A stretch of 64,000 bases of DNA, taken from the NCBI GenBank assembly GCA_002269645.1, contig NIVC01002079.1, positions 62,001 through 126,000 on the forward strand. The letters are read 5' to 3'. How positions within the stretch are numbered: position 1 is the first letter of the stretch; every line of letters starts with the position of its first letter. The position numbers and the translations under genes are program-made. Source of the DNA: Macrostomum lignano (taxonomy: Eukaryota). This document shows, in pieces, positions 1-64,000 of this stretch. The notes beneath the pieces were generated by a model, which ran no database searches, was not told the DNA's origin, and saw only the letters and a program-made list of their open reading frames with translations.

Positions 1-60
1 CTGTACGAACGACTGGCAAGATGGGTGAGGGAGATGTTAGCTAGGGTATAGAGGATTTGG

Positions 61-1432
61 AAGTTGGTCACTGAAATTGAGGATCTGGGTGGTTGGTCAC
101 TGAAATTGAGGATCTGGGTGGTTGGTCACTGAAATTGAAGATTTGGGAGGTTGGTCACTGAAACTAAGGATCTGGGTGGTTGGTCACTGAAATTGAAGAT
201 TTGGGAGGTTGGTCACTGAAATTGAAGATTTAGGAGGTTGGTCACTGAAATTGAAGATCTGGGTGGTTGGTCACTGAAACTGAGGATTTGGGAGGTTGGT
301 CACTGAAACTGAGGATTTGGGAGGTTGGTCACTGAAACTGAGGATTTGGGAGGTTGGTCACTGAAACTGAGGATCTGGGTGGTTGGTCACTGAAACTGAG
401 GATCTGGGAGGTTGGTCACTGAAACTGAGGATTTGGGAGGTTGGTCACTGAAACTAAGGATCTGAGAGGTTGGTGACCAAGATTCAGGTCTGAGAGAGAT
501 TGGTCACTGAAACTGAGGATCTGAGAGGTTGGTGACCAAGATTCAGGTCTGAGAGAGATTGGTCACTGAAACTGAGGATCTGGGAGGTTGGTCACTGAAA
601 TTGAGGATCTGGGAGGTTGGTCACTGAAACTGAGGATCTGGGAGGTTGGTCACTGAAACTGAGTATCTGGGAGGTTGGTGACCAAGATTTAGATCTGGGT
701 GGTTGGTCACTGAAACTGAGGATTTGGGAGGTTGGTCACTGAAACTGAGGATCTGGGAGGTTGGTCACTGAAATTGAGGATCTGGGAGGTTGGTCACTGA
801 AACTGAGGATTTGGGAGGTTGGTCACTGAAAATAAGGATCTGAGAGGTTGGTGACCAAGATTCAGGTCTGAGAGAGATTGGTCACTGAAACTGAGGATCT
901 GGGTGGTTGGTCACTGAAATTGAAGATTTGGGAGGTTGGTCACTGAAATTGAAGATTTGGGAGGTTGGTCACTGAAACTGAGGATCTGGGAAGTTGGTCA
1001 CTGAAACTAAGGATCTGAGAGGTTGGTGACCAAGATTCAGGTCTGGGAGATTGGTCACTAAAACTGAGGATCTGGGAGGTTGGTCACTGAAATTGAGGAT
1101 CTGGGAGTTTGGTCACTGAAATTGAGGATCTGGGAGGTTGGTGACCAAGATTTAGGTCTGGGAGATTGGTCACTAAAACTGAGGATCTGGGTGGTTGGTC
1201 ACTGAAACTGAGGATCTGGGAGGTTGGTCACTGAAACTGAGGATTTGGGAGGTTGGTCACTGAAACTAAGGATCTGAGAGGTTGGTGACCAAGATTCAGG
1301 TCTGGGAGATTGGTCACTAAAACTGAGGATCTGGGAGGTTGGTCACTGAAATTGAGGATCTGGGAGGTTGGTGACCAAGATTCAGGTCTGGGAGATTGGT
1401 CACTGAAACTGAGGATCTGGGAGGTTGGTCCC
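61..1432. repeat. 29-bp minisatellite (GGTTGGTCACTGAAACTGAGGATCTGGGA, with a GACCAAGATTCAGGTCTG variant) filling aldolase intron 3
   Basis: Directly visible tandem units from ~61 to ~1432, ending about 8 nt from the exon-3 donor (GTGAGA on the - strand at 1441). Confidence 0.95.
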
Positions 1433-1441
1433 AATTCTCAC

Positions 1442-4400
1442 CTGCAGCACCTCCGGCTCAACAATGGGCACGAGACCATTCTGCTGGCAGATGGAAGCGT
1501 AACGAGCCAGCACGTTGGCGTTCTCCAGCATGGCCTGGTAGGACGGCGTGTTTGGCCCGATCTTCAGCACGCAGCGCCACTTGGCGAACTGGGCGCCGTC
1601 TTTCTTGTACTGGGCGCAGCGCTCCGACAGGCCGTCCAAGCCCTGCAGTGTGTCGGGTTGGGCAGCCATTCTCTAGGGGCGATTCTTTAGGTGATGGATC
1701 TCTAAGTTGCGATTCTCTGAGCGGCGATTTTCTAAGAAGCGATTCTCTGAGTGGCGATTTTCTAAGAAGCGATTCTCTGAGTGGCGATTTTCTAAGAAGC
1801 GATTCTCTGAGTGGCGATTTTCTAAGAAGCGATTCTCTGAGTGGCGATTTTCTAAGAAGCGATTCTCTGAGTGGCGATTTTCTAAGAAGCGATTCTCTGA
1901 GTGGCGATTTTCTAAGAAGCGATTCTCTGAGCGGCGATTTTCTAAGAAGCGATTCTCTGAGTGGCGATTTTCTAAGAAGCGATTCTCTGAGTGGCGATTT
2001 TCTAAGAAGCGATTCTCTGAGTGGCGATTTTCTAAGAAGCGATTCTCTGAGTGGCGATTTTCTAAGAAGCGATTCTCTGAGTGGCGATTTTCTAAGAAGC
2101 GATTCTCTGAGCGGCGATTTTCTAAGAAGCGATTCTCTGAGTGGCGATTTTCTAAGAAGCGATTCTCTGAGTGGCGATTTTCTAAGAAGCGATTCTCTGA
2201 GTGGCGATTTTCTAAGAAGCGATTCTCTGAGTGGCGATTTTCTAAGAAGCGATTCTCTGAGTGGCGATTTTCTAAGAAGCGATTCTCTGAGTGGCGATTT
2301 TCTAAGAAGCGATTCTCTGAGTGGCGATTTTCTAAGAAGCGATTCTCTGAGCGGCGATTTTCTAAGAAGCGATTCTCTGAGTGGCGATTTTCTAAGAAGC
2401 GATTCTCTGAGTGGCGATTTTCTAAGAAGCGATTCTCTGAGTGGCGATTTTCTAAGAAGCGATTCTCTGAGTGGCGATTTTCTAAGAAGCGATTCTCTGA
2501 GTGGCGATTTTCTAAGAAGCGATTCTCTGAGTGGCGATTTTCTAAGAAGCGATTCTCTGAGCGGCGATTTTCTAAGAAGCGATTCTCTGAGTGGCGATTT
2601 TCTAAGAAGCGATTCTCTGAGTGGCGATTTTCTAAGAAGCGATTCTCTGAGTGGCGATTTTCTAAGAAGCGATTCTCTGAGCGGCGATTTTCTAAGAAGC
2701 GATTCTCTGAGTGGCGATTTTCTAAGAAGCGATTCTCTGAGTGGCGATTTTCTAAGAAGCGATTCTCTGAGTGGCGATTTTCTAAGAAGCGATTCTCTGA
2801 GTGGCGATTTTCTAAGAAGCGATTCTCTGAGTGGCGATTTTCTAAGAAGCGATTCTCTGAGTGGCGATTTTCTAAGAAGCGATTCTCTGAGTGGCGATTT
2901 TCTAAGAAGCGATTCTCTGAGTGGCGATTTTCTAAGAAGCGATTCTCTGAGCGGCGATTTTCTAAGAAGCGATTCTCTGAGTGGCGATTTTCTAAGAAGC
3001 GATTCTCTGAGTGGCGATTTTCTAAGAAGCGATTCTCTGAGCGGCGATTTTCTAAGAAGCGATTCTCTGAGTGGCGATTTTCTAAGAAGCGATTCTCTGA
3101 GTGGCGATTTTCTAAGAAGCGATTCTCTGAGTGGCGATTTTCTAAGAAGCGATTCTCTGAGTGGCGATTTTCTAAGAAGCGATTCTCTGAGTGGCGATTT
3201 TCTAAGAAGCGATTCTCTGAGTGGCGATTTTCTAAGAAGCGATTCTCTGAGTGGCGATTTTCTAAGAAGCGATTCTCTGAGCGGCGATTTTCTAAGAAGC
3301 GATTCTCTGAGTGGCGATTTTCTAAGAAGCGATTCTCTGAGTGGCGATTTTCTAAGAAGCGATTCTCTGAGTGGCGATTTTCTAAGAAGCGATTCTCTGA
3401 GCGGCGATTTTCTAAGAAGCGATTCTCTGAGTGGCGATTTTCTAAGAAGCGATTCTCTGAGTGGCGATTTTCTAAGAAGCGATTCTCTGAGTGGCGATTT
3501 TCTAAGAAGCGATTCTCTGAGCGGCGATTTTCTAAGAAGCGATTCTCTGAGTGGCGATTTTCTAAGAAGCGATTCTCTGAGTGGCGATTTTCTAAGAAGC
3601 GATTCTCTGAGTGGCGATTTTCTAAGAAGCGATTCTCTGAGTGGCGATTTTCTAAGAAGCGATTCTCTGAGTGGCGATTTTCTAAGAAGAAATGATCTAA
3701 GTGGCGATTCACAAAAGGAAATCAATAGGGAGAAAGAAACCAGGGCCAATTAACTTCATCAATAACAGACTCTCCAAGGCCCTCACCTGGGTGGTGCACT
3801 CGTCATGGGAGCCGGCCAGCGGCACGACGCCCTTGTCCACCTTGATCCCGGGAATGATGCCGCGCTTCTGCAGCACCTGCGGGAACGGAGTGCCACAGTC
3901 GGCCTTCTGGTAGAAGGTCTCGTGGAACAGAATCACGCCGGAGATATAGTTGGACACTTCGGCATCGGCGGTGAACAGCAGCTGACGGTACAGGCGTCTG
4001 TTCTCCTCGGTGTTCTCAACGTTGATGCCCTGGAAGCGCTTGGCGCAGGTGCCTTGGCGAAAAGGAGAAATTGACAGGTTGGAACAATTTATGATTTATG
4101 AGTTGATTACATTCTGCGTAATACACATTAGGCATGTTGGTGTTAACCCCTCCCTGATTCTTCAGTGGGTACTGCTACTCAGTCATCAGGTATTTCATTA
4201 GGTACTGCTACTCAGTCATCAGGTATTTCATTAGGTACTGCTACTCAGTCATCAGGTATTTCATTAGGTACTGCTACTCAGTCATCAGGTATTTCATTAG
4301 GTACTGCTACTCACTCATCAGGTATTTCATTAGGTACTGCTACTCACTCATCAGGTATTTCATCCCCACTTCTCATCCACTATTCATGCTCTTCAAGCAC

Positions 4401-6065
4401 CAATGCTTATGCTGTGCGGTTCCATTTAATTCCAGTCTTGCCCAAAGCTTTAGCCTATCCATATTAAAAGTACAAAGGGACGGAAATGCTAATGCATCCG
4501 AAGCCCGTTTGGTCCCGTTCCAGTACAAATAATGGACACAAACAACACCAGACCAACTTGTGTGTTTATAGAAAAAATGTAACTTCTAATACATATAGAA
4601 GTTAATGCACAATTTATACTACTGACTACTAGCTGGAAAATGTAATAAACTGACTGGAATGCTTTACCAAGATTGCACTGTACTTTATTACTCTTTAAGG
4701 CCCCTTGTCAAACACAAACGCTCGCACAGGCTCTCTCTCTGTCTGTCTCTTTCTCTCTCCCCTTCTCGTCTCGCTCGGAAGGAGATCAATAAAAACCAGT
4801 CGAAACCTGCCGACCCGTCTGGCGCAGAAGTGTACACTCCTGCTGTACACCTTTCCCTGCGCCCGTCTACAGAGGCTGGAATCTCGCGCAGAGAGAGGGG
4901 AGAGAGAGGAAAGGAGGCTAGGAGTGCGTATGGGGGCAAAATACAAGCCCAGATACGGAGGACGCTTCTCTAATCTAGCCAACGGTCTTTCTGACTATAC
5001 TTGTAGATGGAGTGAGCCGTTACTATATGCTAAGTTCACTGGAAGGTCAATTAAACTTATAAACAGAATTTTCACTAATATCTAAACTAAACAAAGTAGT
5101 ACAGGCACAGCGTGCTAAATGAACTTTGAAGAGTAAAAAACAATGGAATTTTGAGCGAGTCACAGAAAAGCAAACAAATGACTTAATATTCGATAAAACA
5201 AGTTTCTTTTCAAAACACAAAACTTTATGGATTGAAACATTTCCGAACTTAAATTAAAACAGGACTGAAATTAATAAGTTCCACTGTTTGAAAATACAGC
5301 TATGACCCTCATAGAAAAGACAGCTATGGCTCTCATTGGGAATACAGCTGACTCTCATTGGGAAGACAGCTATGAGTCTCATTGGAAAGACAGCTGACTC
5401 TCATTGGAAAGACAGCTATGACTCTCATTGGGAAGACAGCTATGACTCTCATTGGAAAGACAGCTATGACTCTCATTGGGAAGACAGCAGACTCATTGGA
5501 AAGACAGATGACTCTCATTGGGAAGACAGCTATGACCCTCATTGGAAAGACAGCTATGACTCTCATTGGGAAGACAGCTATGACTCTCATTGGGAAGAAA
5601 GCTATGACTCTCATTGGAAAGACAGCTATGACTCTCATTGAGAAGACAGCAATGACTCTCATTGGAAAGACAGCTATGACCCTCATTGGAAAGACAGCAA
5701 TGACTCATTGGAAAGACAGCTATGACTCTCATAGGAAAGACAGCTATGACCCTCATTGGAAAGATAGCAATGACTCATTAGAAAGACAGATATGACTCTT
5801 ATTGGGAAGACAGCAATGACCCTCATTGGGAAGACAGCTATGACCCTCATTGAGAAAACAACCTTGAACATCATCAAAAAGACAGCTATAAAAGTACAGT
5901 GACCAAAATTAAAAAGACAAAATGAGCACTCCTAAAATGCAACTAAAGCTTACCAGTGCTTTCATCAGCAGCCAAAATGCCTTTGCCAGGAGCAGCAATA
6001 GCATTGGCAATATCGCGCAGCTCCTTCTGCTTCTCAGCACTCAGATATTCAGCATAGGAAGGCAT
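1442..6065 (-). CDS. ALDO: Class I fructose-bisphosphate aldolase, 5' three coding exons; remainder lies left of the window
   Basis: Exons 5954-6065 (MPSYAEYL...[10 protein letters not shown]), 3787-4052 (GTCAKRFQ...GVILFHET...[11 protein letters not shown]...TTQ) and 1442-1642 ([27 protein letters not shown]...PIVEPEVLQ). All introns GT-AG, phases 1,0,0 consistent. Hallmark aldolase motifs AADES, AKWR and VEPE are present. Confidence 0.97.
1700..3690. repeat. Near-perfect 30-bp minisatellite (GATTCTCTGAGTGGCGATTTTCTAAGAAGC), ~66 copies, aldolase intron 2
   Basis: Exact 30-nt period visible line by line. The only variation is a T/C site (GTGGCG/GCGGCG). The unit is a dimer of related 15-mers. 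Confidence 0.98.
4169..4363. repeat. 33-bp tandem repeat x6, aldolase intron 1
   Basis: GTACTGCTACTCAGTCATCAGGTATTTCATTAG starting at 4169, 4202, 4235, 4268, 4301, 4334. Confidence 0.92.
5295..5860. repeat. ~24-bp minisatellite (GACAGCTATGACTCTCATTGGAAA), aldolase intron 1
   Basis: About 23 imperfect units with occasional deletions, ending ~90 nt from the exon-1 donor. Confidence 0.92.
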
Positions 6066-6427
6066 GATGATTCAGGTAGTTTAAATTGATTATTAAGGGC
6101 TATAGCCAAAAAGCTGGAATGTGAATTTTTGTTAATATCAAATAAGTATACCTAATAACTACAAGAATTATGATAGATATATCAGTTAAAAAATTAAAGG
6201 AAAACAAAAGTAAAACAAAGAAAAATAGTTTCTAGAAAAAAATAGATGCTTTAAAATTAACTTAAAAAACAAAAATATATCTTTAAGTTTTTTAAAATTT
6301 GTATTGACAAAATTAAAAACTAAATTTTCATACCAGCATATGCCTGTCATGATCTTTATTAATAGATAAGGCCTCAACTAAATAAGGTTGCTAGTCAGAT
6401 TATCATATTCTATTTAGTATTTTATCA

Positions 6428-9300
6428 CTGGGTTTTTTTTTTTGCCAGAGATAAGGTGCGAAATCGCACCTTGTGCCAAATTTCAAGGTGCGATTTTAAG
6501 GCTCAGAGTGCAATTTCTCTTGAGTCTTGTTTAGAATGTGAGGGTTTCACGAGAGATATTCAGACAGACATTCGAAACGATCGTCTGTAACTTTAAACAA
6601 AATTGACCCGCTTCAACCATCTTTTTGGCAAATACTTACGCAAGTGTTGGGCATCAAATAAGCTTTAATTTATTAACTGAAGTAAAAATCCTTCTGACAT
6701 ACATTGATTTAAAAATTGCTTAGCAACACTAGCTCTGATTAGAAATCGCTTTACTGTTGACTAAAATTGTTTTGATCGTAGCAGCCTAAAAGCAGATACT
6801 GGATTTAAAAATGCTTCGATTTACTCTATACGCATGTCTCAGCTTTAAAATAACACCTCAGGCGTCGCAAAAGACAGCTTTGATGCTGAGATATTCGACA
6901 CTAAACATGCATTGCTTTGCGCAATCTCACATTCAGAAATTTCACTGATTTTTTGTCGATATTTGTGCAGTTGCCATGTCCTTGTTTTTCATCAGAAACT
7001 TGTCAAATTCTAGTCATGTCCAGTTTAAACCTGGACTTCTCTTAAACTGTCTTAAGTATTTGATTTTTAATGATTCCTGCCTTTATATTGCATAGATTGT
7101 ACCTGAGTCAGTGAGTCTGTGAGTGTACATTTGTACATTTGGCAACCAATCATGACTTTTTCACCGCTTTGCGGTTCAAATAAATATACGAGTGTACAAG
7201 AAACATGTTCCAACTGTTATTGAGAGAAATTGACGTCGCGTTTATTAACAGTCAGTGGCAATTAATATGAAGCAAATAGTTTATTGTTATGTTTTTACTT
7301 TTTTTGCGTGGCAATTCTGCTATCCAAATCGGAATGAGGTAAGCGGTGGGAATAAAATAAAAAGGAAGAATTTTTTCTACTGTTGTTGCAACCCAATAGC
7401 TATATGTACTTCAAACTTTTTAGATTGAACAGGCGATTTCTAATGTACTGCTAAGCTTTCCAATCCCTACGGACTACAGTAGCAGTTCTTAACTTTTTTT
7501 CTGTCTTGACTTCTAGACTCGGAATTCGGAACAACCTAAGGAGCCGCATGAAAATATTTAATTGGATAAAAATATTTTTTAAAAACAGCTCAAGTCGTGA
7601 CACATCTTCTTCTCACCTCAGTCCATCAACTGCTGCTCCTTCTGAGACCAAAGCGATCGTGAAAGTAAAACAGATCAGTTTAGATCCCATGGCCATGAAT
7701 ACAACCATTTCAATTGTGAACCTGCTTCGCTTACAAGTACGAGCACTAGCCTTCCATTTGATGCCATTAGCTCACTTAACTCTGAAATAGTTCAAGGACG
7801 GTTCCAAATGTTGAGATCTGACGTAGAAGCAGTCCAATTTGTGGAAATTTATCAACTGGACTCCATGAATCACTCCAATGAAAGGCGGCGAATAGCTGTA
7901 GAATGCGTAAACAAGTTTAAGTGAGTCACAAAAACCCCATTTACTGTAACTACATACACTTGTACGTTAGCAAGGCTCCATGCGATGGTTAATAAATGGA
8001 GAAGTAGACAAGCATCTGAACAAATATTGAATAAAAATCAGTGAAGTTTCCGAATGTGAGTTTGAGCAAAGCAATGTTTAGTGTCGAATATCTCAGCATC
8101 AAAGCTGTCTTTTGCAATGCCTGAGGTGTCATTTTAAAGCTGAGACATGCGTATAGACATGACTAGAATTTGACAAGATTCTGATGAAAAACAAGGACAT
8201 GGCAACTGCACAAATATCAACAAAAAATCAGTGAAATTTCTGAATGTGAGATTGCGCAAAGCAATGCATGTTTAGTGTCGAATATCTCAGCATCAAAGCT
8301 GTCTTTTGCGACGCCTGAGGTGTCATTTTAAAGCTGAGACATGCGTATAGAGTAAATCGAAGCATTTTTAAATCCAGTATCTGCTTTTAGGCTGCTACGA
8401 TCAAAACAATTTTAGTCAACAGTAAAGCGATTTCTAATCAGAGCTAGTGTTGCTAAGCAATTTTTAAATCAATGTATGTCAGAAGGATTTTTACTTCAGT
8501 TAATAAATTAAAGCTTATTTGACGCCCAACACTTGCGTAAGTATTTGCCAAAAAGATGGTTGAAGCGGGTCAATTTTGTTTGAAGTTACAGACAATCATT
8601 TTGAATGTCTGTCTGAATGGGTCTCCCTAAAACATGCCCCGCACCGCCCTGCAGCGCTACACATTAAAACAAATTGGACTATAACTAAAGACACTTCAGA
8701 ATGCGTTTTCTATTAAGCTTCAAGTTTTTATTAAATTTAGTTTTTTTTACTTTGAAATATAAAATTCGGTGAACAATAAGTGATATTAATAATAATATTA
8801 ATAAAATGATAATATTATAATTTAATAATGAAAATGAGAATATAAAAAAATAATAATATTTAAAAAAATAAATAAAGATATTTATTTTCAATTACTATTT
8901 TAACTTTTCCTTGCAATCAAATACTGCATTGACAAAAAATGTTATAATGTGTAGCAGTTCGGGGCCCAGTGCGGGGCGTGTTTTAGGGAGCCTTTGTCTG
9001 AATATCTCTCGTGAAACCCTCACATTGCTCACATTTCAGACAACTGGGAATGTATATTTTAATATCTTACATAAGGCTATAGCTATAGGCTATATCGCCT
9101 ATATGACTTAATAGGATTTAAAGAGTTATTTTGTTTCATATTTTAAGGCAGTGCATAAAAAATAGCTTAAGCATGGTTAAGCCTTTAAAGAAAAATGGTT
9201 ATAAGACCGCACCTAAACCGCACCTACTTTTTTAATTTCAGGGTGCGATTTTAAAATTTAGGGTGCATACGCACACTCTGCGCACAAAAAAAAAACCCTG
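6428..9300. mobile_element. Non-autonomous hAT-type DNA transposon (2.87 kb) with nested inverted repeats
   Basis: Termini CTGGGTTTTTTT... (6428) and ...AAAAAAACCCTG (9300) are imperfect TIRs of the CAGGG type. They are flanked by an exact 8-bp direct repeat TTTTATCA (6420-6427 and 9301-9308). No transposase ORF. An 8-bp TSD is the established hAT signature. Confidence 0.8.
6558..8618. mobile_element. Foldback-like unit: ~460-bp inverted arms (6558-7020 / 8157-8618) around a ~1.1-kb spacer
   Basis: The arm ATTCAGACAGACATT...AAATTCTAGTCATGTC is the reverse complement of GACATGACTAGAATTT...AATGTCTGTCTGAAT, with only ~8 substitutions that I could find. 8030-8156 is a partial extra copy of the right arm. 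Confidence 0.85.
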
Positions 9301-12300: not shown

Positions 12301-12439
12301 TCTCAACTCGATATTGCATCTGCTAGGTGATAGACTAGCCAAAATTGACCAATGGGTAGCATGAGAATTGATTGATGCAGCAGGCGTTCTGCCTCAAATT
12401 GACTTCTGGCGATTCAGTTAAAGGCGAGTGACGGACCAG

Positions 12440-13020: not shown

Positions 13021-13275
13021 GAATGGTAGGAGATAAAGACATGAGAGAGAGTGTGTGGAACCCCGTCACACAGGTTGGAACCAGAGAAGGCTGAGGGAGG
13101 AGAAGAGAGAAGTGCTCAAACCTGGTGATGAGCCAGGAAAAAACTCCAGTAGAGACCAGTCAGCCCGCATGGGACCACCTACCATCCCAAGAGGTTGGAA
13201 GGAGAAGGAAAACTACAAGGGGAAAATTCAGCTTCGTCGGAGACCCTCATGATCAACGACTTTCTAAAGTGCAGA

Positions 13276-21189
<7,914 letters not shown>

Positions 21190-21679
21190 GCCTCATCAGG
21201 GGTGCTGATTGAAACTGTGTGGAGCAATTGGCAGACAGGTTTTTTCAGAGCCTCTCCTCGCTGAGCTGCAGCAACAAAAATTAATCAAGGCTAATAATGA
21301 ACGAGCGCGTCTTTTCGTCTCAGGTTCGAACCGGAATGAATCCAGTTTTGATGGCTAGCGATGAATGCAAAGTACTTTTGCTGCCAAGCAGATGAGAGGC
21401 GCAAGGGTAAGCAGGTAAAATGCTTTTGGCGCTGCTTTTAGACTTGATTTGCTCTGGGGATTGTCACGGATCGCCTAGCAGTTGAACTGAGGCTGGGAGA
21501 GCGCAGGATCTGACAACTGAGCAGGAGCAGAGTCGAGTACCTGGCAGCGGCTTTAAATTGGTTGCTAGGGGGGGGGTGCAAGACAGGATCTGCGCGGTTG
21601 TCGAATGAAATTCGAGACCGTCAGCACCATCAGCCAATGGCGATTCAAGTCAGGGGGAGATTTTAAAAATGGGAGTCTG

Positions 21680-22190
21680 ATTGGGGATCTGGAAGTAATA
21701 TTGAGGACCTGAGAGTGAGATTGGGAATCTGAGAGTGAGATTGGGGATCTGAGAGTGAGATTGGGGATCTTAGAGTGAGATTAGGGATCTGAGAGTGAGA
21801 TTAGGGATCTGAGAGTGAGATTGGGGATCTGGGAGTGAGATTGGGGATCTGGGAGTGAGATTGGGGATCTGAGAGTGGGATTGGGGATCTGAGAGTGAGA
21901 TTGGGGATCTTAGAGTGAGATTAGGGATCTGAGAGTGAGATTAGGGATCTGAGAGTGAGATTAGGGTCTGGCAGTGAGATTGGGGATCTGAGAGTGAGAT
22001 TAAGGATCTGGGGGTGAGATTGAGGATCTGAGAGTGAGATTGGGGATCTGAGAGTGAGGTTATGGATCTGAGAGTGAGATTAGGGATCTGAGAGTGAGAT
22101 TGGGGATCTGAGAGTGAGATTGAGGATCTGGAAGTGAGATTGGGGATCTAAGAGTGAGATTGGGATCTGAGGGTGAGATTCAGGAGCTGG
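21680..22190. repeat. 20-bp minisatellite (TTGGGGATCTGAGAGTGAGA), same family as 20058-21128
   Basis: About 25 units upstream of the GPCR start codon. Confidence 0.93.
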
Positions 22191-22911
22191 ACGATTGAGG
22201 ATCTGGTAGATAGGGGCTCTAATGGTGCAGTTAGGGATCTGTGAGAAACCAGGACATTGGGTGTTATCGCAGGATCTGCTTTCCTTACACACTGCTGATA
22301 ATGGGTTAATAATTGAATGAAAATCAATGTGCATTTCTCACGAATTTCAGTAAAATTGTTTACAATAACACGGTCGTTTTAATTTTCTTTCACAATTCCA
22401 ATCCAGTGAATGTTTTAAAGAACTCTTGGCAGAAAAAACCTGTTTTTATCTTTTCAGCTTCTCAAAGACTGGAAGGAAACGTTATTTATTAAACTGAGTC
22501 TTCACTACAAGCAACTGCAATTTAGAAACTGTCTGCATTTTTAACAAGCAAGTTTTTATGTAGTTATTTTTTAATTGTAGAATTTCATTTTTCATTTTTC
22601 TTTCATAATCCTTCTTCTATTTTATCTTAAGCCGCTTTTGTTTGCTTTCTCCTTGAGCAGTCTGAGTGCAATAAAAGAGTTTTATTTAAAGCAGAAAATT
22701 TAATTAGACAGACACGTCAGTGGCGAGCGTCACAGAAACAGTACAGCAAAAGGTCGAAAAATTATTTCTTTCCAGTTTTAGTTCGTTCGTTCCTATCAAC
22801 TACTGTTAGTAGAGATGTGACATTTTATGCTTAACACATGAATTTTTAACTCAAGAGAATTGATGAGCCGCTTGCAGCTCGCCGTGTCTTTATGCACACA
22901 GACGATTCATC

Positions 22912-23397
22912 CTTCCCATCTCGTCCCCAATCAGTAAGTACACTGATGACTCATCATTCCCATCTCGTCCCCAATCAGTAAGTACACTGATGACTCATCA
23001 TTCCCATCTCGTCCCCAATCAGTAAGTACACTGATGACTCATCATTCCCATCTCGTCCCCATTCAGTAAGTACACTGATGACTCATCATTCCCATCTCGT
23101 CCCTTTTCTGCATGTACACTGATGACTCATCATTCCCATCTCGTTCCTTTTCTGCATGTACACTGATGACTCACCATTCCCATCTCGTCCCTTTTCTGCA
23201 TGTACACTGATGACTCACCATTCCCATCTCGTCCCTTTTCTGCATGTACACTGATGACTCATCGTTCCCATCTCGTCCCTTTTCTGCATGTACACTGATG
23301 ACTCATCGTTCCCATCTCGTCCCCTATCTGCATGTACACTGATGACTCACCATTCGCATCTCGTCCCTTATCTGCATGTACGCTGATGACTCATCGC
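22912..23397. repeat. 44/43-bp minisatellite, ~11 copies
   Basis: TTCCCATCTCGTCCCCAATCAGTAAGTACACTGATGACTCATCA switching to a ...CTTTTCTGCATGTACAC... variant. Confidence 0.93.
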
Positions 23398-23839
23398 TCA
23401 AACTTCTAATAATTTTGCCTCAAATGGTACTACCATTTATCCACTAAAAATCAGTACCTTATGTTCTCTCCAACAGCTTAGTAAATTTAAATGTAAATGT
23501 AATTACGAAGTAAGGAAATTATTTTGTTCTGCAAGGTTTCGCATTAACAGTTGCATAAAATGCTAAAATGATACTTTTCGATCTGTCAACAACCAGTCCC
23601 AGCCGGTTGGTCAGTAAGAGTGAACTGCCGAAATATTCGGAGACCTGGAAATACGCAATATTCACGAAGGTAAAATTTTACTGCGCTATTGTCGACACAT
23701 AAAATAAATGAAAAAACGGGTCTCAGAGTTTTCATTGCCACATTAACAGCTGGCAAGAAAGTGAAAGCAACTGCTTAAAAAATCTCAAGTTCAACAAGTT
23801 GATTTCAATTGCAAATTTTCTGCAAGCGGAGCATGGAAA

Positions 23840-24031
23840 ATCAGAGCGCTGCTGCAGCGGTGGCTGGTGAGTGCTTTGTGATGCAGATCTATCAAAATAA
23901 ATAAACTTTTACACTTTATCAAAAATCAACTTCCATTTGTAATCGAAATTCTGCCTTGAACTTGTCTTTCAGATCAAGAAGACCGTACGAAAAAGTTCTG
24001 CAAGAAAAGTGCTGCAGATTCAGCGAACCAG
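23840..24031 (+). other. Candidate non-coding 5'-UTR exons of the SLC26 gene
   Basis: Donor GGCTG|GTGAGT at ~23866, acceptor TCTTTCAG|ATC at 23972, donor CCAG|GTGAGC at 24031. Good consensus sites, but no transcript evidence is available here. Confidence 0.35.
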
Positions 24032-24089
24032 GTGAGCAGTCGGTCATGAGGAACTAAATTATAAATATGCTGTCAGATACTCAGTCAAA

Positions 24090-25720
24090 TGTGTGTCTGA
24101 CTTGATATCTATTGTGTCTGACTTGATATCTATAGTGTCTGACTTGATATCTATTGTGTCTGTCTTGATATCTATTGTGTCTGACTTGATATCTATTGTG
24201 TCTGTCTTGATATCTATTGTGTCTGTCTTGATATCTATTGTGTCTGACTTGATATCTATTGTGTCTGTCTTGATATCTATTGTGTCTGACTTGATATCTA
24301 TTGTGTCTGTCTTGATATCTATTGTGTCTGACTTGATATCTATAGTGTCTGACTTGATATCTATTGTGTCTGTCTTGATATCTATTGTGTCTAACTTGAT
24401 ATCTATTGTGTCTGTCTTGATATCTATTGTGTCTGACTTGATATCTATAGTGTCTGACTTGATATCTATTGTGTCTGTCTTGATATCTATAGTGTCTGAC
24501 TTGATATCTATTGTGTCTGTCTTGATATCTATTGTGTCTGTCTTGATATCTATTGTGTCTGTCTTGTTATCTATAGTGTCTGTCTTGATATCTATTGTGT
24601 CTGTCTTGATATCTATTGTGTCTGACTTGATCCCTATAGTGTCTGTCTTGATATCTATAGTGTCTGACTTGATCCATATAGTGTCTGACTTAATCCCTAT
24701 AGTGTCTCTCTTGATCCCTATAGTGTCTCTCTTGATCCCTATAGTGTCTGACTTGATCCCTATAGTGTCTGACTTGATCCCTATAGTGTCTGTCTTGATC
24801 TCTATAGTGTCTGACTTGATATCTATTGTGTCTGTCTTGATATCTATTGTATCTGTCTTGATATCTATAGTGTCTGACTTGATCCCTATAGTGTCTGTCT
24901 TGATCTCTATAGTGTCTGACTTGATCCCTATAGTGTCTGACTTAATCCCTATAGTGTCTGTCTTGATCCCTATAGTGTCTGTCTTGATATCTATAGTGTC
25001 TGTCTTGATCTGTCTGTCTTGATCCCTATAGTGTCTGTCTTGATCTCTATAGTGTCTGACTTGATATCTATAGTGTCTGTCTTGATATCTATAGTGTCTG
25101 TCTTGATCTGTCTGTCTTGATCCCTATAGTGTCTGTCTTGATCTCTATAGTGTCTGACTTGATATCTATTGTGTCTGTCTTGATATCTATTGTATCTGTC
25201 TTGATATCTATAGTGTCTGACTTGATCCCTATAGTGTCTGTCTTGATCTCTATAGTGTCTGACTTGATCCCTATAGTGTCTGACTTAATCCCTATAGTGT
25301 CTGTCTTGATCCCTATAGTGTCTGTCTTGATATCTATAGTGTCTGTCTTGATCTGTCTGTCTTGATCCCTATAGTGTCTGTCTTGATCTCTATAGTGTCT
25401 GACTTGATATCTATAGTGTCTGTCTTGATATCTATAGTGTCTGTCTTGATCTGTCTGTCTTGATCCCTATAGTGTCTGTCTTGATCTCTATAGTGTCTGA
25501 CTTGATATCTATTGTGTCTGTCTTGATATCTATTGTATCTGTCTTGATGTCTATAGTGTCTGACTTAATCCCTATAGTGTCTGTCTTGATCCCTATAGTG
25601 TCTGTCTTGATATCTATAGTGTCTGTCTTGATCTGTCTGTCTTGATCCCTATAGTGTCTGTCTTGATCTCTATAGTGTCTGTCTTGATCCTTATAGTGCC
25701 TGTCTTGATCCCTATAATGT
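24090..25720. repeat. 21-bp minisatellite (GTGTCTGTCTTGATATCTATA family) with a 343-bp higher-order repeat in its 3' half
   Basis: About 77 units. Identical translated blocks recur at a 343-nt offset (ORF ends 25022 and 25365; ORF starts 25117 and 25460). Confidence 0.94.
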
Positions 25721-26383
25721 CTGTTTTGCCCTAAACAGTCAAGCTAGCCTGCAAGCTGGTGATCACACACTGTAATTCACATGTACATGAAAGTAGGGAT
25801 TGGATTAAGAAATCGAATTTCTCGTCATAAAAATGTTCTGCATATGCAGTGTCAATTCCCGCTCTGATCAAACAGTGGATGCCACAGTGGCTTCAGGTGC
25901 ACTCTACAGAGAGCTCCGGCCCCCGTGTTGTCCTGCCGCCCCCCTGCACAGCCCTACTGACAATGCGATTGGTTGGCTAGTGCGGGAGCAGAGCGGGAGA
26001 GGAGAGAGGGAGACAGTGGGGTAGGGTAGGGAGCCAAGAGAAGTGGGCGGTGGAGAACAACTGCAGGTCCAAGCAGGCGAAGGCTCCCCCCTCTATCCCA
26101 CATGTGTGGGAGAGCAGCTGTTATGGAGCAAAGAAATGGAGTTTTGAATTTTTTAAACTTTACTACCGCAACCTTGAACTCTTGCCGTTTGCTCGATCTA
26201 TACATTCTGCATAGTGGAAACCTTTCCCTCCTAGGAGAAATTCATAATTTAGAAGAAAATAAATTCAACTGCAACACGGACAGGCACAGAGAGAGGCCGT
26301 GACCTGAGAGCCATAGCCCGGGATTAGATATAAGAGTGACCGTTTAATCCTGTCTGTTTCAGTGCTCCAGCGACAGCAGGGAG

Positions 26384-29300
26384 ATGAGCGCCAAGAAGGT
26401 GGATTACACTGCTCTGGTCGGTGAGTAGGGCTGCATTGCCGACATTGTGAACCAAAAGTAATATGAGAATGAGACACTATCAGTCTAGGGACAGATTGTT
26501 TCTGAGATAATCAGTGAGATTAGATCTCAGAGGAAAGATTCTCACCGTTCACACACTTTGTGAGATTAGATCTCTGAGAGAAGATTCTCACCGTTCACAC
26601 ACTTTGTGAGATTAGATCTCAGAGAGAAGATTCTCCCCTACTTACACACTACGTGAGATTAGATCTGAGAGAGAAGATTCTCACCGTTCACACACTTTGT
26701 GAGATTAGATCTGAGAGAGAAGATTCTCACCGTTCACACACTTTGTGAGATTAGATCTCAGAGAGAAGATTCTCACCGTTCATGCACTTTGTGAGATTAG
26801 ATCTCAGAGAGAAGAATCTCACCGTTCACACACTTTGTGAGATTAGATCTGAGAGAAAAGATTCCCCCGTTCACACACTACGTGAGATTAGATCTCAGAG
26901 AAGATTCTCACCGCTCACAACAAGATGAGCTCTCAAGGATTACTGATACGCACAAAAATCCTATCACAAGCCATCGTGTTTCTAGGAAAACTACCAAATT
27001 GTTAATAATAAAACTGACGAATTCTCGGCAGGAGCGGCTGACTCTGCACCAGCACAGACTGCGGAGGCTGGGGAGACCATCTCCTCGGCTGCACCAGCTT
27101 TCCTGATGGCTTCGCCGCCTTCGCAGCACCAACACCAGCACCAGCACCAGCACCAGCGCCTGGCCGAGCTGGTGCCAGCTGGAGAGGCCGGTGCGGTCAT
27201 CGAAGGCGACGACATCGAACTGTTCGCGGCTGACGACGACGACGACGACAGCTTGGCGCCGAGCGACGCCGAGACGGAGCGAAGTGTCCGAGTTCTGAGG
27301 CCGGTGTCCACCCAGCAGCAGTTCGACGATCGACACGGCGGTCGGCTGGTTCGACGGCCGCTGCTGCACCGGCTGCGGGACAGGCTGAAGTCGGCCAAGA
27401 CCGGCTGTCCACCCGATCGGGGGCGCCTGTGCGGAGCTCTCGTGCAGCTGCTGCCGTTTTTGGGCATCATGCGAGAGTACAACCTGCGGGAGTGGCTGCT
27501 GCCCGACCTCATTTCGGGTGAGCCCAGCTGAGGCCGGAGGGTTGAAGGGGCAACGGGTTTCACTTCCGATGGGTCTATGAGTCAGTAGGTTGATGAATGA
27601 GTCAGTAGGTTGATGAATGAGTCTGTAGGTTGATGATTGAGTCAGTAGGTCGATGATTGAGTCAGTAGGTTGATGATTGAGTCAGTAGGTTGATGATTGA
27701 GTCAGTAGGTTGATGAATGAGTCTGTAGGTTGATGATTGAGTCAGTAGGTTGATGATTGAGTCAGTAGGTTGATGATTGAGTCAGTAGGTAGATGAATGA
27801 GTCCTTGATGAAAGAGTCAGTACTTTTTCTCATGAGACTGGATTACTGAATATTACAGTAAAAAATAATGCCTGAATAAAACAATTTGTACGCCTCACTT
27901 GATCAGTATAAACGTAACTTGCATGACTAACAAACTACAATGGCTTAGTTGATTTAAAACAAATGAATTTCTGCTTTCAAGTCAGTCTGCAGTACAGTAT
28001 TCTTCCCTTTGCAATTAATTTTCGCCTGATTAATTACGCGCGAAAGACGTCATGCTCAGTCGATCAAAATTTTGGCCTAATTATTACATATCTATTTTAT
28101 CCGGAGTTCGCTCGAGAGACCAATGTACATTGGCTGTGACGGCTGGGGGCAGAGATGTAATGGCTAACTGAAAGGCTCCTGCAATGTACATTGGCTGTGA
28201 CGGCTGGGGGCAGAGATGTAATGGCTAACTGAAAGGCTCCTGCAATGTACATTGGCTGTGACGGCTGGGGGCAGAGATGTAATGGCTAACTGAAAGGCTC
28301 CTGCAATGTACATTGGCTGTGACGGCTGGGGGCAGAGATGCAATGGCTAACTGAAAGGCTCCTGTAATGTACATTGGCTGTGACGGCTGGGGGCAGAGAT
28401 GTAATGGCTAACTGAAAGGCTCCTGCAATGTACATTGGCTGTGACGGCTGGGGGCAGAGATGTAATGGCTAACTGAAAGGCTCCTGCAATGTACATTGGC
28501 TGTGACGGCTGGGGGCAGAGATGTAATGGCTAACTGAAAGGCTCCTGCAATGTACATTGGCTGTGACGGCTGGGGCAGAGATGTAATGGCTAACTGAAAG
28601 GCTCCTGCAATGTACATTGGCTGTGACGGCTGGGGGCAGAGATGCAATGGCTAACTGAAAGGCTCCTGTAATGTACATTGGCTGTGACGGCTGGGGGCAG
28701 AGATGTAATGGCTAACTGAAAGGCTCCTGCAATGTACATTGGCTGTGACGGCTGGGGCAGAGATGTAATGGCTAACTGAAAGGCTCCTGCAATGTACATT
28801 GGCTGTGACGGCTGGGGGCAGAGATGTAATGGCTAACTGAAAGGCTCCTGCAATGTACATTGGCTGTGACGGCTGGGGGCAGAGATGTAATGGCTAACTG
28901 AAAGGCTCCTGCAATGTACATTGGCTGTGACGGCTGGGGGCAGAGATCCCTACGATGTCGAGGCTTGCAGGGAATCGCTATAATGCTGTAGTAGTGCTAT
29001 AATGACTCAGAATTACTGAAATTTCAATGGATTAGGGTTAGGTTAGAGTTAGGGTTAGGGTTAGGGTTAGGCTAGGGTTAGGGTTAGGGTTAGGCTAAGG
29101 TTAGGGTACGTTAGAAGGTTGACAGATTTTTTTTAGATTTCAAGGCTTATTGGGGGCATCGCTGAGATGTCAAGGGGGGAAGTTGATATGTTAAAGCTTG
29201 TGGGGGGGGGAATTACTGACATGTCAAGGCTTACAAGGGACTTCTGAGATATATTGCAGAGATGCTACATGTAGTTTATTACAAAACTTGTACTGCATTT

Positions 29301-32300
29301 TTGGCTCCCAACGCTAAGATACTAAGCTAAAAATACTACTAGCGCTTCACAAACTTATGCAGATGTCAGGCTGTAGGGTTAGTGTTAGGGTTGGTATTAG
29401 GGTTTAGGTTTAGGGTTAGGTTCAGGGTTATTGCGTTAAGATTCGGGTTAGGGTTAGGGTTAGGGTAGCTTATAACTTAGCTCATGTAGCTTATTAAAAT
29501 GTTTATCATGGAAGCATCATGCAAAAATAATGGAAGCGTCATGTAAAAATCATAGAAGCATCATGCAAAAACTCATGGACAAAATATTGAATTTAGGGTT
29601 TTGTTTAGGGTTAGGGTTAGGGTTAGAAGTTTGACAGGAGATTTTTTAAGATTTCAAGGCTACATGTAGCTTATTAAAAAAACGTGTATTGCATTTCTTT
29701 GGCTTCCCAACGGGGGTCGTAGATTGCTAGTGGCTAACTGAAAGGCTCCTGCAATGTACCTTGGCCGTGACGGCTGGGGGCAGAGATGTAATGGGTAACT
29801 GAAAGGCCCCTGCAATGTACCTTGGCTGTGACGGCTGGGGGGCAGAGAAGTAATGGCTAACTGAAAGGCTCCTGCAATGTACCTTGGCTGTGACGGCTGG
29901 GGGCAGAGATGCAATGGCTAACTGAAAGGCCCCTGCTTATTTCAAACTTTTGCACACCCTTACTGAGCAAAACATTCTCAATCCACAATTTTTTCAGGCC
30001 TGACGGTGGGCATCATGCACATCCCCCAGGGCATGGCGTACGCCTTCCTGGCCGAGCTGCCGCCCTACCTGGGCCTGTACACCTCCTTCTTCCCTCCTCT
30101 GATCTACTTCTTCTTCGGCACATCGCGTCAGATCTCCATGGGCACCTTGGCGATCGTCTCGCTGCTGATTGGCAGTCTGGTCAGGAAGAACCTGCCGGCG
30201 GTTGCTATGCAGGTGACCCCAGCTGGCGATAATGTGACTGCGGAAGCTTTCATAGTCAATGCCACCTCGATGGCGGCTGACCAGTCGTGGGGATCAGACC
30301 CGCTGATACGGAGCAGAGTCTCCCTGGCCTGCGCCACCTGCCTTTGCGTGGGGCTGATTCAGGTGAGCGACGCGGCAGGTTGGACTTTGGACTCCCAGAT
30401 CCTCAGTTGCTGGGCCAGCTTCCCAGATCCTCAGTTGCTGGGCCAGCTTCCCAGATCCTCAGTTGCTGGGCCAGCTTCCCAGATCCTCAGTTGCTGGGCC
30501 AGCTTCCCAGATCCTCAGTTGCTGGGCCAGCTTCCCAGATCCTCAGTTGCTGGGCCAGCTTCCCAGATCCTCAGTTGCTGGGCCAGCTTCCCAGATCCTC
30601 AGTTGCTGGGCCAGCTTCCCAGATCCTCAGTTGCTGGGCCAGCTTCCCAGATCCTCAGTTGCTGGGTTAGCCTCCCAGATCTTTAGTTTCTGGAGCACCC
30701 TCATCCCAGATGCTCAGTTTCCGGAGCACCCTCATCCCAGATCCTCAGTTTCTGGAGCACCCTCATCCCAGATCCTCAGTTTCTGGAGCACCCTCATCCC
30801 AGATCCTCAGTTTCTGGAGCACCCTCATCCCAGATCCTCAGTTTCTGGAGCACCCTCATCCCAGATCCTCAGTTTCTGGAGCACCCTCATCCCAGATCCT
30901 CAGTTTCTGGAGCACCCTCATCCCAGATCCTCAGTTTCTGGAGCACCCTCATCCCAGATCCTCAGTTTCTGGAGCACCCTCATCCCAGATCCTCAGTTTC
31001 TGGAGCACCCTCATCCCAGATCCTCAGTTTCTGGAGCACCCTCATCCCAGATCCTCAGTTTCTGGAGCACCCTCATCCCAGATCCTCAGTTTCTGGAGCA
31101 CCCTCATCCCAGATTCTCAGTTGTTGAAAAAAGCAGAGCAGCACAGCTTCGCCTGACTCTGTTGAGCCTGTTGGATTTTGCAGTGCGCGGCCGAATTCAT
31201 TCGGGGCTGGTGCGCACGACCATCACCCTACCAGATTCCAAAAACTTCAATTTGACCCGCAACTCTCGATAATTCTCCCAACAACCAGCTGCTCATGGGC
31301 ATCTTGCGACTCGGCTTTCTAACTCGCTACCTGAGCGACCCGCTAATCTCCGGGTTCACCATGGGCGTCGCGGTGCACGTTTTCAGCAGCCAGATCAAGT
31401 ACGTGCTGGGCATCAGTGTGCCAGGCAGGAATGGCCTGGCAAGTTTGCCCCTGGTGAGTCTGGGCTGCAAATCTTTGAAGCTTTCATTGATAATGAGCAG
31501 TTAAATAGAATGCAAAGCACCCACTGACCTCTCCGGATCGCCAGCACTACTACGATCTGGCCTGCAACATTGGTCAGACCAATTTTGTCACCCTGGGCAT
31601 CGCGGCCTTTGCCGTAGTGATCCTGTACGTCACCAAGGAATTCGTTAATCCGCGAGTTCGCAAGAAGATTAAAGCGCCTCTGCCGACCGAACTGATCATT
31701 GTAAGAATCCGAGTGCTTGCTCAAACAGCTGTCTTTTTTAGGCAAATTTTCTCATGTCTGACTTAATCTCTACCAGGTAACTCTTGGGACAGTGATCTCC
31801 TATGCGTTCGATCTTAAGAAGAATTACAACGTTAAAATCGTTGGCACCATTCCGACTGGGTAAGGATGCCGATAGATCAGTTTCCTTGCGTTGACTCTCT
31901 GCACCCACCTCACTCCCTGCACCTACCTCACTCCCTGCACCCACCTCACTCCCTGCACCCACCTCACTCCCTGCATCCACCTCACTCCCTGCACTCACCT
32001 CACTGCCTGCACCCACCTCACTCCCTGCACCCACCTCACTCCCTGCACCCACCTCACTCCCTGCACCCACCTCACTCCCTGCACCCACCTCACTGCCTGC
32101 ACTTACCTTACTCCCTGCACCCACCTCACTCCCTGCACCCACATCACTCCCTGCACCCACCTCACTCCCTGCACCCACCTCACTCCCTGCATCCACCTCA
32201 CTCCCTGCACCCACCTCACTGCCTGCACTCACCTCACTCCCTGTGCCCCCTCAATAAGCAACAGCACAAGTGAATGAAGCAGTTGGCAACAAATCGAAAT

Positions 32301-47770: not shown

Positions 47771-48296
<526 letters not shown>

Positions 48297-63988: not shown

Positions 63989-64000
63989 TATTAACTAGCG

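Follow-up and report, generated by a model that had tools for sequence, protein, structure and literature searches.

Why should introns of three unrelated genes carry tandem arrays with one and the same short core, on the strand that is read into the pre-mRNA? The question is raised by a stretch of 64,000 nucleotides of the flatworm Macrostomum lignano (assembly Mlig_3_7, GCA_002269645.1, contig NIVC01002079.1, positions 62001-126000), hereafter the window; the M. lignano sequence compared here amounts to roughly 120 kb once redundant copies are discounted. Simple and tandem repeats make up 15% of the M. lignano genome (PMC5730564). Within the window, tandem arrays account for 33.7% of the sequence (36 arrays of at least 150 bp, detected with TRF), and most of the larger introns are filled by them. 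SLC26 introns with arrays consist of array sequence over 51-91% of their length, and the three SLC26 introns without an array measure 76, 91 and 406 nt. Scans of the window for tRNAs and against Rfam 15 at the gathering threshold yielded no tRNA and no match, respectively.

The core motif, its arrays and their host genes

The exact 11-mer CCAGATCCTCA occurs 61 times in the window, with 0.01 occurrences expected from shuffles, and all copies are confined to the four arrays in which the preliminary description of this DNA had placed a common core (A1 to A4, Table 1). There are 19 copies on the minus strand in 51-1430, 18 (-) in 20054-21126, two (-) in 21679-22206 and 22 on the plus strand in 30393-31122. 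Allowing one or two mismatches adds, outside these arrays, almost exclusively scattered chance matches. The strands and the unit lengths of 29, 20, 20 and 28/31 bp concur with that description. Across the whole family, including a more distant member described below, TRF reported periods of 29, 20, 20, 28/31 and 46 bp, 9-54 copies and 84-96% matches. The units of A3 carry the variant core CAGATCCCCAA; degenerate units of this array run on to about position 22290 and are also found in the spacer between A2 and A3.

Table 1 Arrays of the CCAGATCCTCA family and exons of their host genes (positions in the window)
Feature	Position	Strand	Description
Aldolase class I exon 3	1442..1642	-	PF00274 profile positions 113-178, 1.9e-36
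Aldolase class I, further exon sequence	within 3712-4095	-	PF00274 positions 23-112
GPCR exon 2	19578..20006 or 20029	-	PF00001 positions 1-82; TM1-TM3, ends in DR
SLC26 exon 2	29998..30362	+	ends ...CVGLIQ; donor CAG/GTGAGC opens the A4 intron
SLC26 exon 3	31289..31453	+	starts LLMGILRLGF...; directly follows the A4 intron
A1	51..1432	-	~47 units of 29 bp, sense CAGATCCTCAGTTTCAGTGACCAACCTCC; variant units of 28-30 bp CAGACCTGAATCTTGGTCACCAACCTCT; aldolase intron 3
A2	20054..21128	-	~54 units of 20 bp, CAGATCCTCAATCTCATTTC and CAGATCCTCAATCTCACTCT; upstream of GPCR exon 2
A3	21679..22206	-	~26 units of 20 bp, CAGATCCCCAATCTCACTCT; upstream of the putative GPCR first exon
A4a	30393..30672	+	10 units of 28 bp, CAGATCCTCAGTTGCTGGGCCAGCTTCC; SLC26 intron 2
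A4b	30673..31122	+	14 near-identical units of 31 bp, CAGATCCTCAGTTTCTGGAGCACCCTCATCC; SLC26 intron 2
A5	intron 5 of paralogous SLC26 gene	sense	31-bp units; 23/31 nt identical to A4b, P < 0.003
A6	26514..26919	-	8.9 units of 46 bp; A2-like stretch of ~29 nt, AATCTTCTCTCTGAGATCTAATCTCAC

Pfam confirmed the host genes named earlier, i.e. an aldolase (-), a GPCR (-) and an SLC26 transporter (+). Aldolase exon 3 ends in the donor CAG/GTGAGA at 1442/1441, and since the aldolase exons lie at 1442-1642 and within 3712-4095 on the minus strand, the intron with its first base at 1441 is the one occupied by A1; the repeat begins 9 nt past the 5' splice site of this intron 3. The plus-strand exons flanking 30363-31288 cover profile positions 9-95 and 95-140 of PF00916, and A4 is exactly intronic within this SLC26 intron. 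The family arrays begin 9-52 nt after the donor site. Exon 2 of the GPCR gene lies immediately downstream of A2 and has two acceptor candidates, one at 20006 (cis) and one at 20029. The latter is in frame with the ATG that ends the M. lignano spliced leader (PMC8629364). A2 is GPCR intron 1 provided that ATGGATGAAGA (21189-21179) is a true exon, and an outron otherwise. Because A2 and A3 are only 550 bp apart on the same strand and their units differ by 1 nt, the two arrays are not independent. The agreement in orientation had been counted over four cases with a chance of 1/8; it concerns three independent loci in the window, for which the chance of agreement is 1/4.

The rebuilt gene models comprise 474, 478 and 423 aa for the GPCR and 824 and 864 aa for SLC26. 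A protein homology search with the genes of the window returned only UniRef fragments or paralogs.

Homology and turnover of the arrays

The similarity between the arrays is not restricted to the core. The units of A1 and A4 have an exact 18-mer in common, and the comparison of units within the window also revealed an exact 13-mer shared among the family arrays. Outside the core, the units of A1 align with those of A4b (P = 0.001) and A4a (P = 0.0005), and the A2 unit agrees with the A1b unit at 16 of 17 nt, after which it lacks 9 nt. The arrays are hence homologous over their units. When the units of A1 were anchored on the core, core positions departed from the consensus with a frequency of 0.058 and the other positions with one of 0.051. 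Other long unit matches in the window occur only within one gene or locus, apart from (CTGT)n-type repeats.

Two further members were identified. A5 is retained in three homeologs of the SLC26 paralog, with 18.5, 16.5 and 27.5 copies, and carries a T inserted in its core. A6 is the most diverged member, with alignment scores of 27 (window) and 32 (L071), where shuffles reached at most 22 (P < 0.003). It lies inside the annotated range of the SLC26 (+) gene, where the family core strand is antisense, a call that rests on the annotated 5'-extended SLC26 model and not on exon-by-exon rebuilding. A protein search with translated repeat periods detected two UniRef gene models whose translations run through A4a-type arrays, both in sense; such a search finds sense copies only, because antisense frames carry stop codons, and these two loci were left out of the orientation tally. 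The paralogous GPCR locus (31 kb) contains seven intronic arrays, all unrelated, and a search of it for family members gave none. A metagenome scan for two cores spaced 9-20 nt apart returned 65 stretches, all of them unrelated arrays or coding repeats, and the extended 16-mer was present in none of the 65. The closest of these stretches was a 15-bp unit, TCTCCAGATCCTCAA, on L053.

In the homeologous regions, which correspond to about 24-52 kb of the window and exclude A1-A3, every array examined has kept its place and orientation; the DNA there shows 93-98% identity, and the array copy numbers differ up to 5-fold. Position is conserved and turnover is rapid. SLC26 intron 2 measures 926 nt in the window and 451 and 230 nt in two homeologs, with 22, 5 and 0 exact cores, respectively; the homeologous units read CAGATCATCAG, CAGACTCTCAG and CAGATCCCCAG, and the homeologous SLC26 genes are intact (898-aa models). 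The A4a type is found in both homeologous copies too, and the 31-bp sub-array A4b is missing from both and thus private to the window copy. Dozens of unrelated arrays occupy neighbouring introns in the same manner as the CCAGATCCTCA-family arrays.

Taken together, the arrays form one homologous minisatellite family, which probably fills introns without a function or under weak selection at most; this neutrality is inferred. All family units probably derive from an ancestral unit of about 29-31 bp, of which the 20-bp form would be the 29-bp form minus 9 nt, and the 28- and 31-bp forms would have arisen through small indels. The core CCAGATCCTCA would then be the longest stretch still identical among the most recently amplified copies. 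Slippage or unequal exchange probably drives growth and shrinkage of the arrays together with fast homogenisation of new variants. Daughter arrays appear to be mostly local and in direct orientation (A2, A3 and A6), with presumed occasional seeding elsewhere, as in the genes for the aldolase, SLC26, the SLC26 paralog, an ARL3-like protein and a PID/PDZ protein. We would guess that new introns are seeded via ectopic repair synthesis or template switching. That the arrays are intronic follows from the fact that nearly all non-coding DNA near genes in M. lignano is minisatellite.

Orientation and alternative explanations

The core had been reported as always in sense. With the additional members, four independent loci are sense (aldolase, GPCR, SLC26 and the SLC26 paralog) and one is antisense (A6), a distribution compatible with chance. 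The earlier proposal of a 'seed' minisatellite with an orientation bias is therefore retained in its first half, a dispersed family with whole-unit homology, no shared flanks and further host genes, and not borne out in its second, as 4/5 is compatible with chance and A6 is antisense.

A bias could nonetheless arise if transcription filtered otherwise neutral DNA, so that arrays survived in introns mainly when the C-rich strand becomes the RNA. A flipped array would be G-rich and more structured, and its 20-bp units would have one consensus donor AGA/GTGAGA each. We consider such a filter unlikely, albeit the most serious alternative. All four well-preserved independent members (A1, A2/A3, A4 and A5) are in sense (one-sided P = 1/16). 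In each of the arrays tested, the antisense RNA forms the more stable fold, with sense/antisense values of -22/-47, -8/-31, -56/-67 and -36/-50 kcal/mol and z-scores of -2.1 to -3.3 for the antisense folds. Among the 20 confirmed intronic arrays, the sense strand has more C than G in 14 (P = 0.12) and the weaker folding of the sense RNA gives a Wilcoxon P of 0.16. Six intronic arrays, A2 among them, have one copy of GT[AG]AG, a motif enriched at donors in M. lignano (PMC8629364), in each unit of their antisense strand; only two have it on the sense strand. Precedent comes from other systems, in which repeats are established to do harm when the G-rich strand is the non-template one (PMC4256205; PMC12038398).

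Against the filter, none of these counts reaches significance (14/20, P = 0.12; 6 vs 2; 4/4, P = 0.06 one-sided), A6 lies antisense inside SLC26, the array in a PhyH intron presents 11 donor-like GTAAG motifs on its sense strand, and three G-rich arrays are in sense within SLC26 intron 1. Furthermore, the antisense strands of A1 and A4 are devoid of GTRAG, which limits the donor argument to A2 and A3. Neither a general rule that equates the C-rich with the sense strand (14/20, P = 0.12) nor donor-motif avoidance (6 vs 2 arrays, not significant) was adopted. There is only a small chance that intronic minisatellites are filtered genome-wide such that the C-rich, weakly folding and donor-free strand is transcribed. 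It is just as doubtful that the 4/4 sense arrays are the local trace of such a filter, under which repeat-stuffed introns would be spliceable in one orientation only. On present evidence, the orientation of the arrays relative to their host genes is a historical accident.

The arrays were also proposed to be multimerised RNA elements, in which CCAGAUCCUCA in the pre-mRNA would bind a splicing, export or snRNP factor and would have been amplified as additional copies help processing. In line with this proposal, the well-preserved arrays are in sense, their C/U-rich, weakly structured sense RNA would be accessible, and the arrays are located near 5' splice sites. The only similarity to the spliced leader (PMC8629364) is the 8-mer CTCAATTT, which is at about chance level by our own estimate. 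Several observations speak against the proposal: homeologous SLC26 introns have 0 or 5 exact cores versus 22 and their genes are intact, the core is kept no better than the remainder of the unit and is interrupted by a T in A5, unrelated arrays occupy neighbouring introns of the same genes, and no Rfam match was obtained. An RNA element is thus very improbable.

Many animal minisatellite families originate within transposons. Dispersal over at least five unrelated genes would also suit arrays that reached the introns as tandem repeats inside an inserted mobile element (a MITE, Helitron or similar). In a self-BLAST of the array-masked window, however, no two family arrays had homologous flanks, and transposon ends were not found around the family arrays in the window. 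Moreover, the arrays abut splice signals and leave no space for element ends; the shortest homeologous intron (230 nt) is repeat except for about 50 nt after the donor and 45 nt ahead of the acceptor. We therefore give a transposon-borne origin very little credence. Least probable of all is a convergent origin, in which arrays born in place would resemble each other through intron composition or YnCAG splice-like motifs: the units do include the acceptor-like CCCAG, CTCAG and TTTCAG and, by eye, the left edge of A1 looks like an exon-intron junction, but an exact 18-mer across unrelated genes and the significant similarity of the rest of the unit lie far above composition, and other long unit matches, simple (CTGT)n-type repeats aside, stay within one gene or locus.

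Significance and comparison with known systems

The CCAGATCCTCA arrays are ordinary repeat DNA, a related and fast-changing intron padding. The finding documents one minisatellite family among many in a repeat-rich, gene-dense region and has little significance as it stands. It bears on genome annotation, as several public M. lignano gene models treat these arrays as coding sequence. Where introns differ in length among the duplicated copies of the locus, this is mainly due to growth and shrinkage of arrays. A genome-wide sense bias, if true, would inform how a genome tolerates introns that are almost wholly tandem repeat.

Intronic CA repeats bound by hnRNP L regulate splicing. They provide the model for reading the arrays as RNA elements, i.e. 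a multimerised intron motif that recruits a factor. The hnRNP L motifs are conserved at their locus and their length matters, whereas CCAGATCCTCA decays to zero exact copies in homeologs.

The parallel with transcribed G-rich repeats (PMC4256205; PMC12038398) is that in the sense members of the family the G-rich strand is the template strand, the less harmful arrangement in those systems. In contrast to those repeats, the G-rich strands of the CCAGATCCTCA family have only GG/GGG runs and a weak G4 potential; three G-rich arrays, moreover, are in sense in SLC26 intron 1. Mammalian introns show an antisense excess of L1 and LTR elements (reviewed in PMC10030826). The idea in common is that selection acts against splice or processing signals and so determines which strand of an intronic repeat may be transcribed. 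That bias, however, is documented across whole genomes for mobile elements that carry poly(A) and splice signals, whereas the CCAGATCCTCA family comprises five loci that are not mobile elements.

The Y-linked fertility genes of Drosophila have giant introns filled with satellite. Similar to these, the introns described here are almost wholly tandem repeat, which must be transcribed and spliced out. The Drosophila introns contain megabase simple satellites in few testis genes with dedicated processing factors; the CCAGATCCTCA arrays, in contrast, measure 0.2-2 kb and reside in ordinary genes all over a gene-dense region.

The core minisatellites of the Jeffreys type, detected in 1985 with the human probes 33.6 and 33.15, form dispersed arrays with varied unit lengths and a core of 10-18 bp. 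The CCAGATCCTCA core is unrelated to theirs, its units are homologous over their full length and its arrays nearly fill short flatworm introns. In both systems, nonetheless, dispersed arrays of varied unit length have a common core and one G-rich strand, and copy number is hypervariable between copies of one locus.

Host genes and the shared repeat unit

Pfam profiles confirmed the host genes and strands named in the preliminary description, a class I aldolase (PF00274, -), a GPCR (PF00001, -) and an SLC26 gene (PF00916, +). One SLC26 exon has 100% identity to an M. lignano UniRef fragment, and an exact match of the TIR-domain protein encoded at 40952-42430 falls on contig NIVC01002079.1 of GCA_002269645.1, which by coordinate arithmetic puts the window at 62001-126000. 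From the positions of the aldolase exons (see table), the 29-bp array A1 fills intron 3, starting 9 nt past the aldolase donor CAG/GTGAGA (slashes mark splice junctions). The SLC26 intron 2 (30363-31288, +), which holds sub-arrays A4a and A4b, is bounded by exons whose PF00916 positions 9-95 and 95-140 join across it, and every junction of the nine-exon SLC26 model is GT-AG. GPCR exon 2 (TM1-3, -; PF00001 positions 1-82) lies directly downstream of the 20-bp array A2, which occupies either GPCR intron 1 or an outron. The 35-nt M. lignano spliced leader (PMC8629364) ends in an ATG whose frame one GPCR acceptor would continue, and an alternative acceptor is compatible with a tiny candidate exon, upstream of which lies the second 20-bp array, A3. 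An acceptor upstream of SLC26 exon 1 likewise matches the frame of the spliced-leader ATG. Judged by these frames, the start codons of both genes may be supplied by the spliced leader.

Coordinates of features in the window
Feature	Position	Strand	Details
Aldolase class I exon	1442-1642	-	PF00274 profile positions 113-178
Aldolase class I exon	inside 3712-4095	-	PF00274 profile positions 23-112
Aldolase first exon	near 5975	-	
CCAGATCCTCA copies, A1	51-1430	-	n=19; period 29 bp
CCAGATCCTCA copies, A2	20054-21126	-	n=18; period 20 bp
CCAGATCCTCA copies, A3	21679-22206	-	n=2; period 20 bp
CCAGATCCTCA copies, A4	30393-31122	+	n=22; periods 28/31 bp
Array A6	26514-26919	-	46-bp units
GPCR acceptor	20029	-	CCTAAAG/CAATCC
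Alternative GPCR acceptor	20006		
Tiny candidate GPCR exon	21189-21179		ATGGATGAAGA
Acceptor upstream of SLC26 exon 1	26986	+	GTTTCTAG/GAAAAC
PhyH intron array	37164-37839		- strand gene; 34-bp units
TIR protein gene	40952-42430	-	single exon, 493 aa; C-terminal TIR domain (PF13676)
Blocks of 61-bp array	28121-28947, 29731-29936		SLC26 intron 1
(TTAGGG)n tracts	29032-29107, 29374-29466, ~29605		SLC26 intron 1
Fold-back	6558-7020 / 8156-8618		inverted repeats 463 bp, 98% identical, 1.1 kb apart
Fold-back	63160-63417 / 63733-63990		inverted repeats 258 bp, 100% identical, 0.3 kb apart
Tetranucleotide array	17188-17835		in intron of - strand GPCR
Tetranucleotide array	47771-48295		near other - strand genes

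The common core reported for the four arrays was recovered: the window contains 61 copies of the 11-mer CCAGATCCTCA, where dinucleotide-preserving shuffles predict 0.01. With one or two mismatches permitted, a scan of the window found only scattered chance matches outside the arrays. Tandem Repeats Finder returned the differing unit lengths already described. Alignments of the units show that the four arrays are homologous beyond a shared motif. The aldolase and SLC26 units have 18 exact bases in common, TCCCAGATCCTCAGTTTC, the longest match between arrays of separate genes, simple (CTGT)n-type repeats excepted. Units deprived of their first 10 nt still align (A1/A4b, P = 0.001; A1/A4a, P = 0.0005, against shuffles), and 16 of 17 nt in the 20-bp A2 unit agree with the 29-bp variant unit of aldolase, after which 9 nt are missing. 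Within A1 the non-consensus frequency is 0.058 in the core and 0.051 in the rest of the unit, despite anchoring of the units on the core. Self-comparison of the array-masked window revealed neither flank homology between any two family arrays nor transposon ends. Hence the core is the best-preserved stretch of a common ancestral unit, not a module placed within unrelated repeats. Every few units, A1 (51-1432) carries a variant, CAGACCTGAATCTTGGTCACCAACCTCT, in which GTGACCAA is swapped for its reverse complement TTGGTCAC, creating 8-bp inverted repeats between adjacent units.

The reading as a dispersed minisatellite family is further supported by additional members, most of them in other genes. 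An SLC26 exon used as query led to the paralog PAA59271 (contig NIVC01002283.1); the 31-bp unit CAGATCCTTCAGTGGCTGCTGCCCCTCCCCT is repeated 18.5 times, in sense, in its intron 5 (array A5; 23/31 nt identical to A4b, P < 0.003); the array is retained in both duplicates of the paralog (16.5 and 27.5 copies). The - strand of A6 includes roughly 29 nt that resemble A2, with likeness scores of 27 for the window array and 32 for its counterpart in a homeolog; shuffles reached 22 at most (P < 0.003). Since the C-rich strand of family arrays is open in all three frames, the protein database was searched with translated repeat periods. Two UniRef M. lignano models of genes outside the window, an ARL3-like protein and a PID/PDZ protein, read into A4a-type arrays, showing that the family is dispersed. 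Among older public UniRef models, P0003, P0004 and P0010 contain A4a-type arrays translated as protein, P0010 also with long stretches resembling translation of the reverse strand. These models seem to be annotation artefacts produced by arrays open in all three frames. A metagenome scan returned unrelated arrays only. Metagenome contig Ga0105106_10321811 (14-99) carries a 15-bp tandem unit, TCTCCAGATCCTCAA, resembling the A2 unit minus 5 nt, which could be from a related flatworm or a chance likeness.

Orientation of the arrays in their host genes

The claim that the arrays always lie in the sense orientation was weakened. A spacer of 550 bp that itself holds degenerate units separates A2 from A3, and their units differ at 1 nt; the two therefore count as one event, leaving three independent cases in the window, not the four proposed. 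Together with A5, four independent loci (A1, A2/A3, A4, A5) are in sense (one-sided P = 1/16). The ARL3-like and PID/PDZ arrays were excluded from this tally because stop codons in antisense copies make those undetectable by protein search. Against the rule stands A6, the most diverged member. The annotated SLC26 range (+) continues beyond window position 26197, where the retrieved locus ends, and those of both homeologs also run past the A6 equivalents, so A6 falls within the SLC26 model of the + strand while its own family strand is -. This antisense call is based on the annotated 899-aa SLC26 model; our own model, of 824 aa, falls short of its 5' exons. Since A1, A2, A3 and A6 are all on - and only A4 is on +, the supposed flipping of strand with the host gene reduces to one flip, which falls inside the SLC26 transcription unit and not at a gene boundary. 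Closely spaced related arrays on one strand are frequent in this window (A2/A3, 31894/33374, 28121/29731, 17188/18611), which is enough to explain the - strand cluster. Shared repeats are not all on one strand, as the two tetranucleotide arrays show: one reads (CTGT)n, the second the complementary (CAGA)n.

A transcription-linked filter on array orientation is reasonable, given published effects of orientation on transcribed G-rich repeats (PMC4256205, PMC12038398), but is not demonstrated. For each family array RNA folding is weaker on the sense than on the antisense strand (the G-rich strand of A1 folds with z = -2.9), and the antisense of the 20-bp units presents the consensus donor AGA/GTGAGA in every unit, the enriched M. 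lignano donor motif being GT[G/A]AG (PMC8629364). The sense strand is C-rich in 14 of the 20 confirmed intronic arrays; in six of the 20 each unit has one GTRAG confined to the antisense strand, versus two with it in sense. None of these counts reaches significance (14/20: P = 0.12), and the inclusion of related arrays raises them. An exception to plain cryptic-donor avoidance is the PhyH intron array: GTAAG occurs 11 times on its sense strand, many units offer a good donor-like CA/GTAAGA, and the gene model nevertheless splices past the array. Three arrays of SLC26 intron 1 are moreover G-rich in sense.

Homeologous copies and array turnover

Chromosomal material is duplicated in M. lignano, and the most informative test is the comparison with the two homeologs of the SLC26/PhyH/TIR locus. 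These were reached via protein clusters of the TIR protein (493, 509 and 355 aa in the three copies) and a rebuilt 360-aa PhyH protein; the comparison covers about 24-52 kb of the window (24000-52400), leaving out copies of A1-A3. Unique DNA is 93-98% identical among the three copies. Every array examined in this region has an identical site and orientation in the homeologs, while copy numbers differ up to 5-fold, with 17, 90 and 19 copies of the PhyH intron array and 17, 73 and 52 of a 25-bp array. One homeolog (L067) has two additional arrays, at 4773-5843 and 13302-13642.

The preliminary description had alternatively proposed a multimerised RNA element, a reading which is unsupported. SLC26 intron 2 measures 926 nt in the window copy (10 A4a and 14 A4b units, 22 exact cores), 451 nt in the second (A4a-type units alone, 5 exact cores) and 230 nt in the third, where about six degenerate units (CAGATCCCCAG, CAGACTCTCAG, CAGATCATCAG, CATATCCTCAG) include no exact core. 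The SLC26 models are intact in all three (898-899 aa). This series fits poorly with a pre-mRNA that needs many CCAGAUCCUCA sites, and Rfam families and tRNAs had no match anywhere in the window. Sub-array A4b, which bears the best match to the aldolase unit, is confined to the window copy. The pattern looks like that of a neutral minisatellite with fast turnover.

Repeat background of the window

Minisatellite content largely determines intron size in the window. Among the SLC26 introns in 27518-34980, the three array-free ones measure 76, 91 and 406 nt, and those with arrays 448-2480 nt, 51-91% of it array. In SLC26 intron 1, interstitial telomere-type (TTAGGG)n tracts sit between blocks of one 61-bp array; neither homeolog has them, intron 1 being about 1.0-1.4 kb shorter there, and they look like an insertion or repair scar specific to the window copy. 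The two inverted-repeat structures listed in the table could be transposons of the fold-back or terminal-inverted-repeat type. Seven arrays occupy introns of a paralogous GPCR locus on another contig, and none of them belongs to the A1-A6 family.

In a full-text literature search for Macrostomum and minisatellite the family was not described, the terms co-occurring, once each, in one paper, a survey of G-quadruplex motifs in 37 species, on another subject. The family thus appears undescribed so far, but sequences of this kind are ordinary. According to the genome paper, 15% of M. lignano DNA consists of simple and tandem repeats (PMC5730564); this gene-dense window is far denser, its 36 arrays of at least 150 bp covering 33.7%. 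Introns thus normally contain an array here, and any explanation must be judged with this in view.
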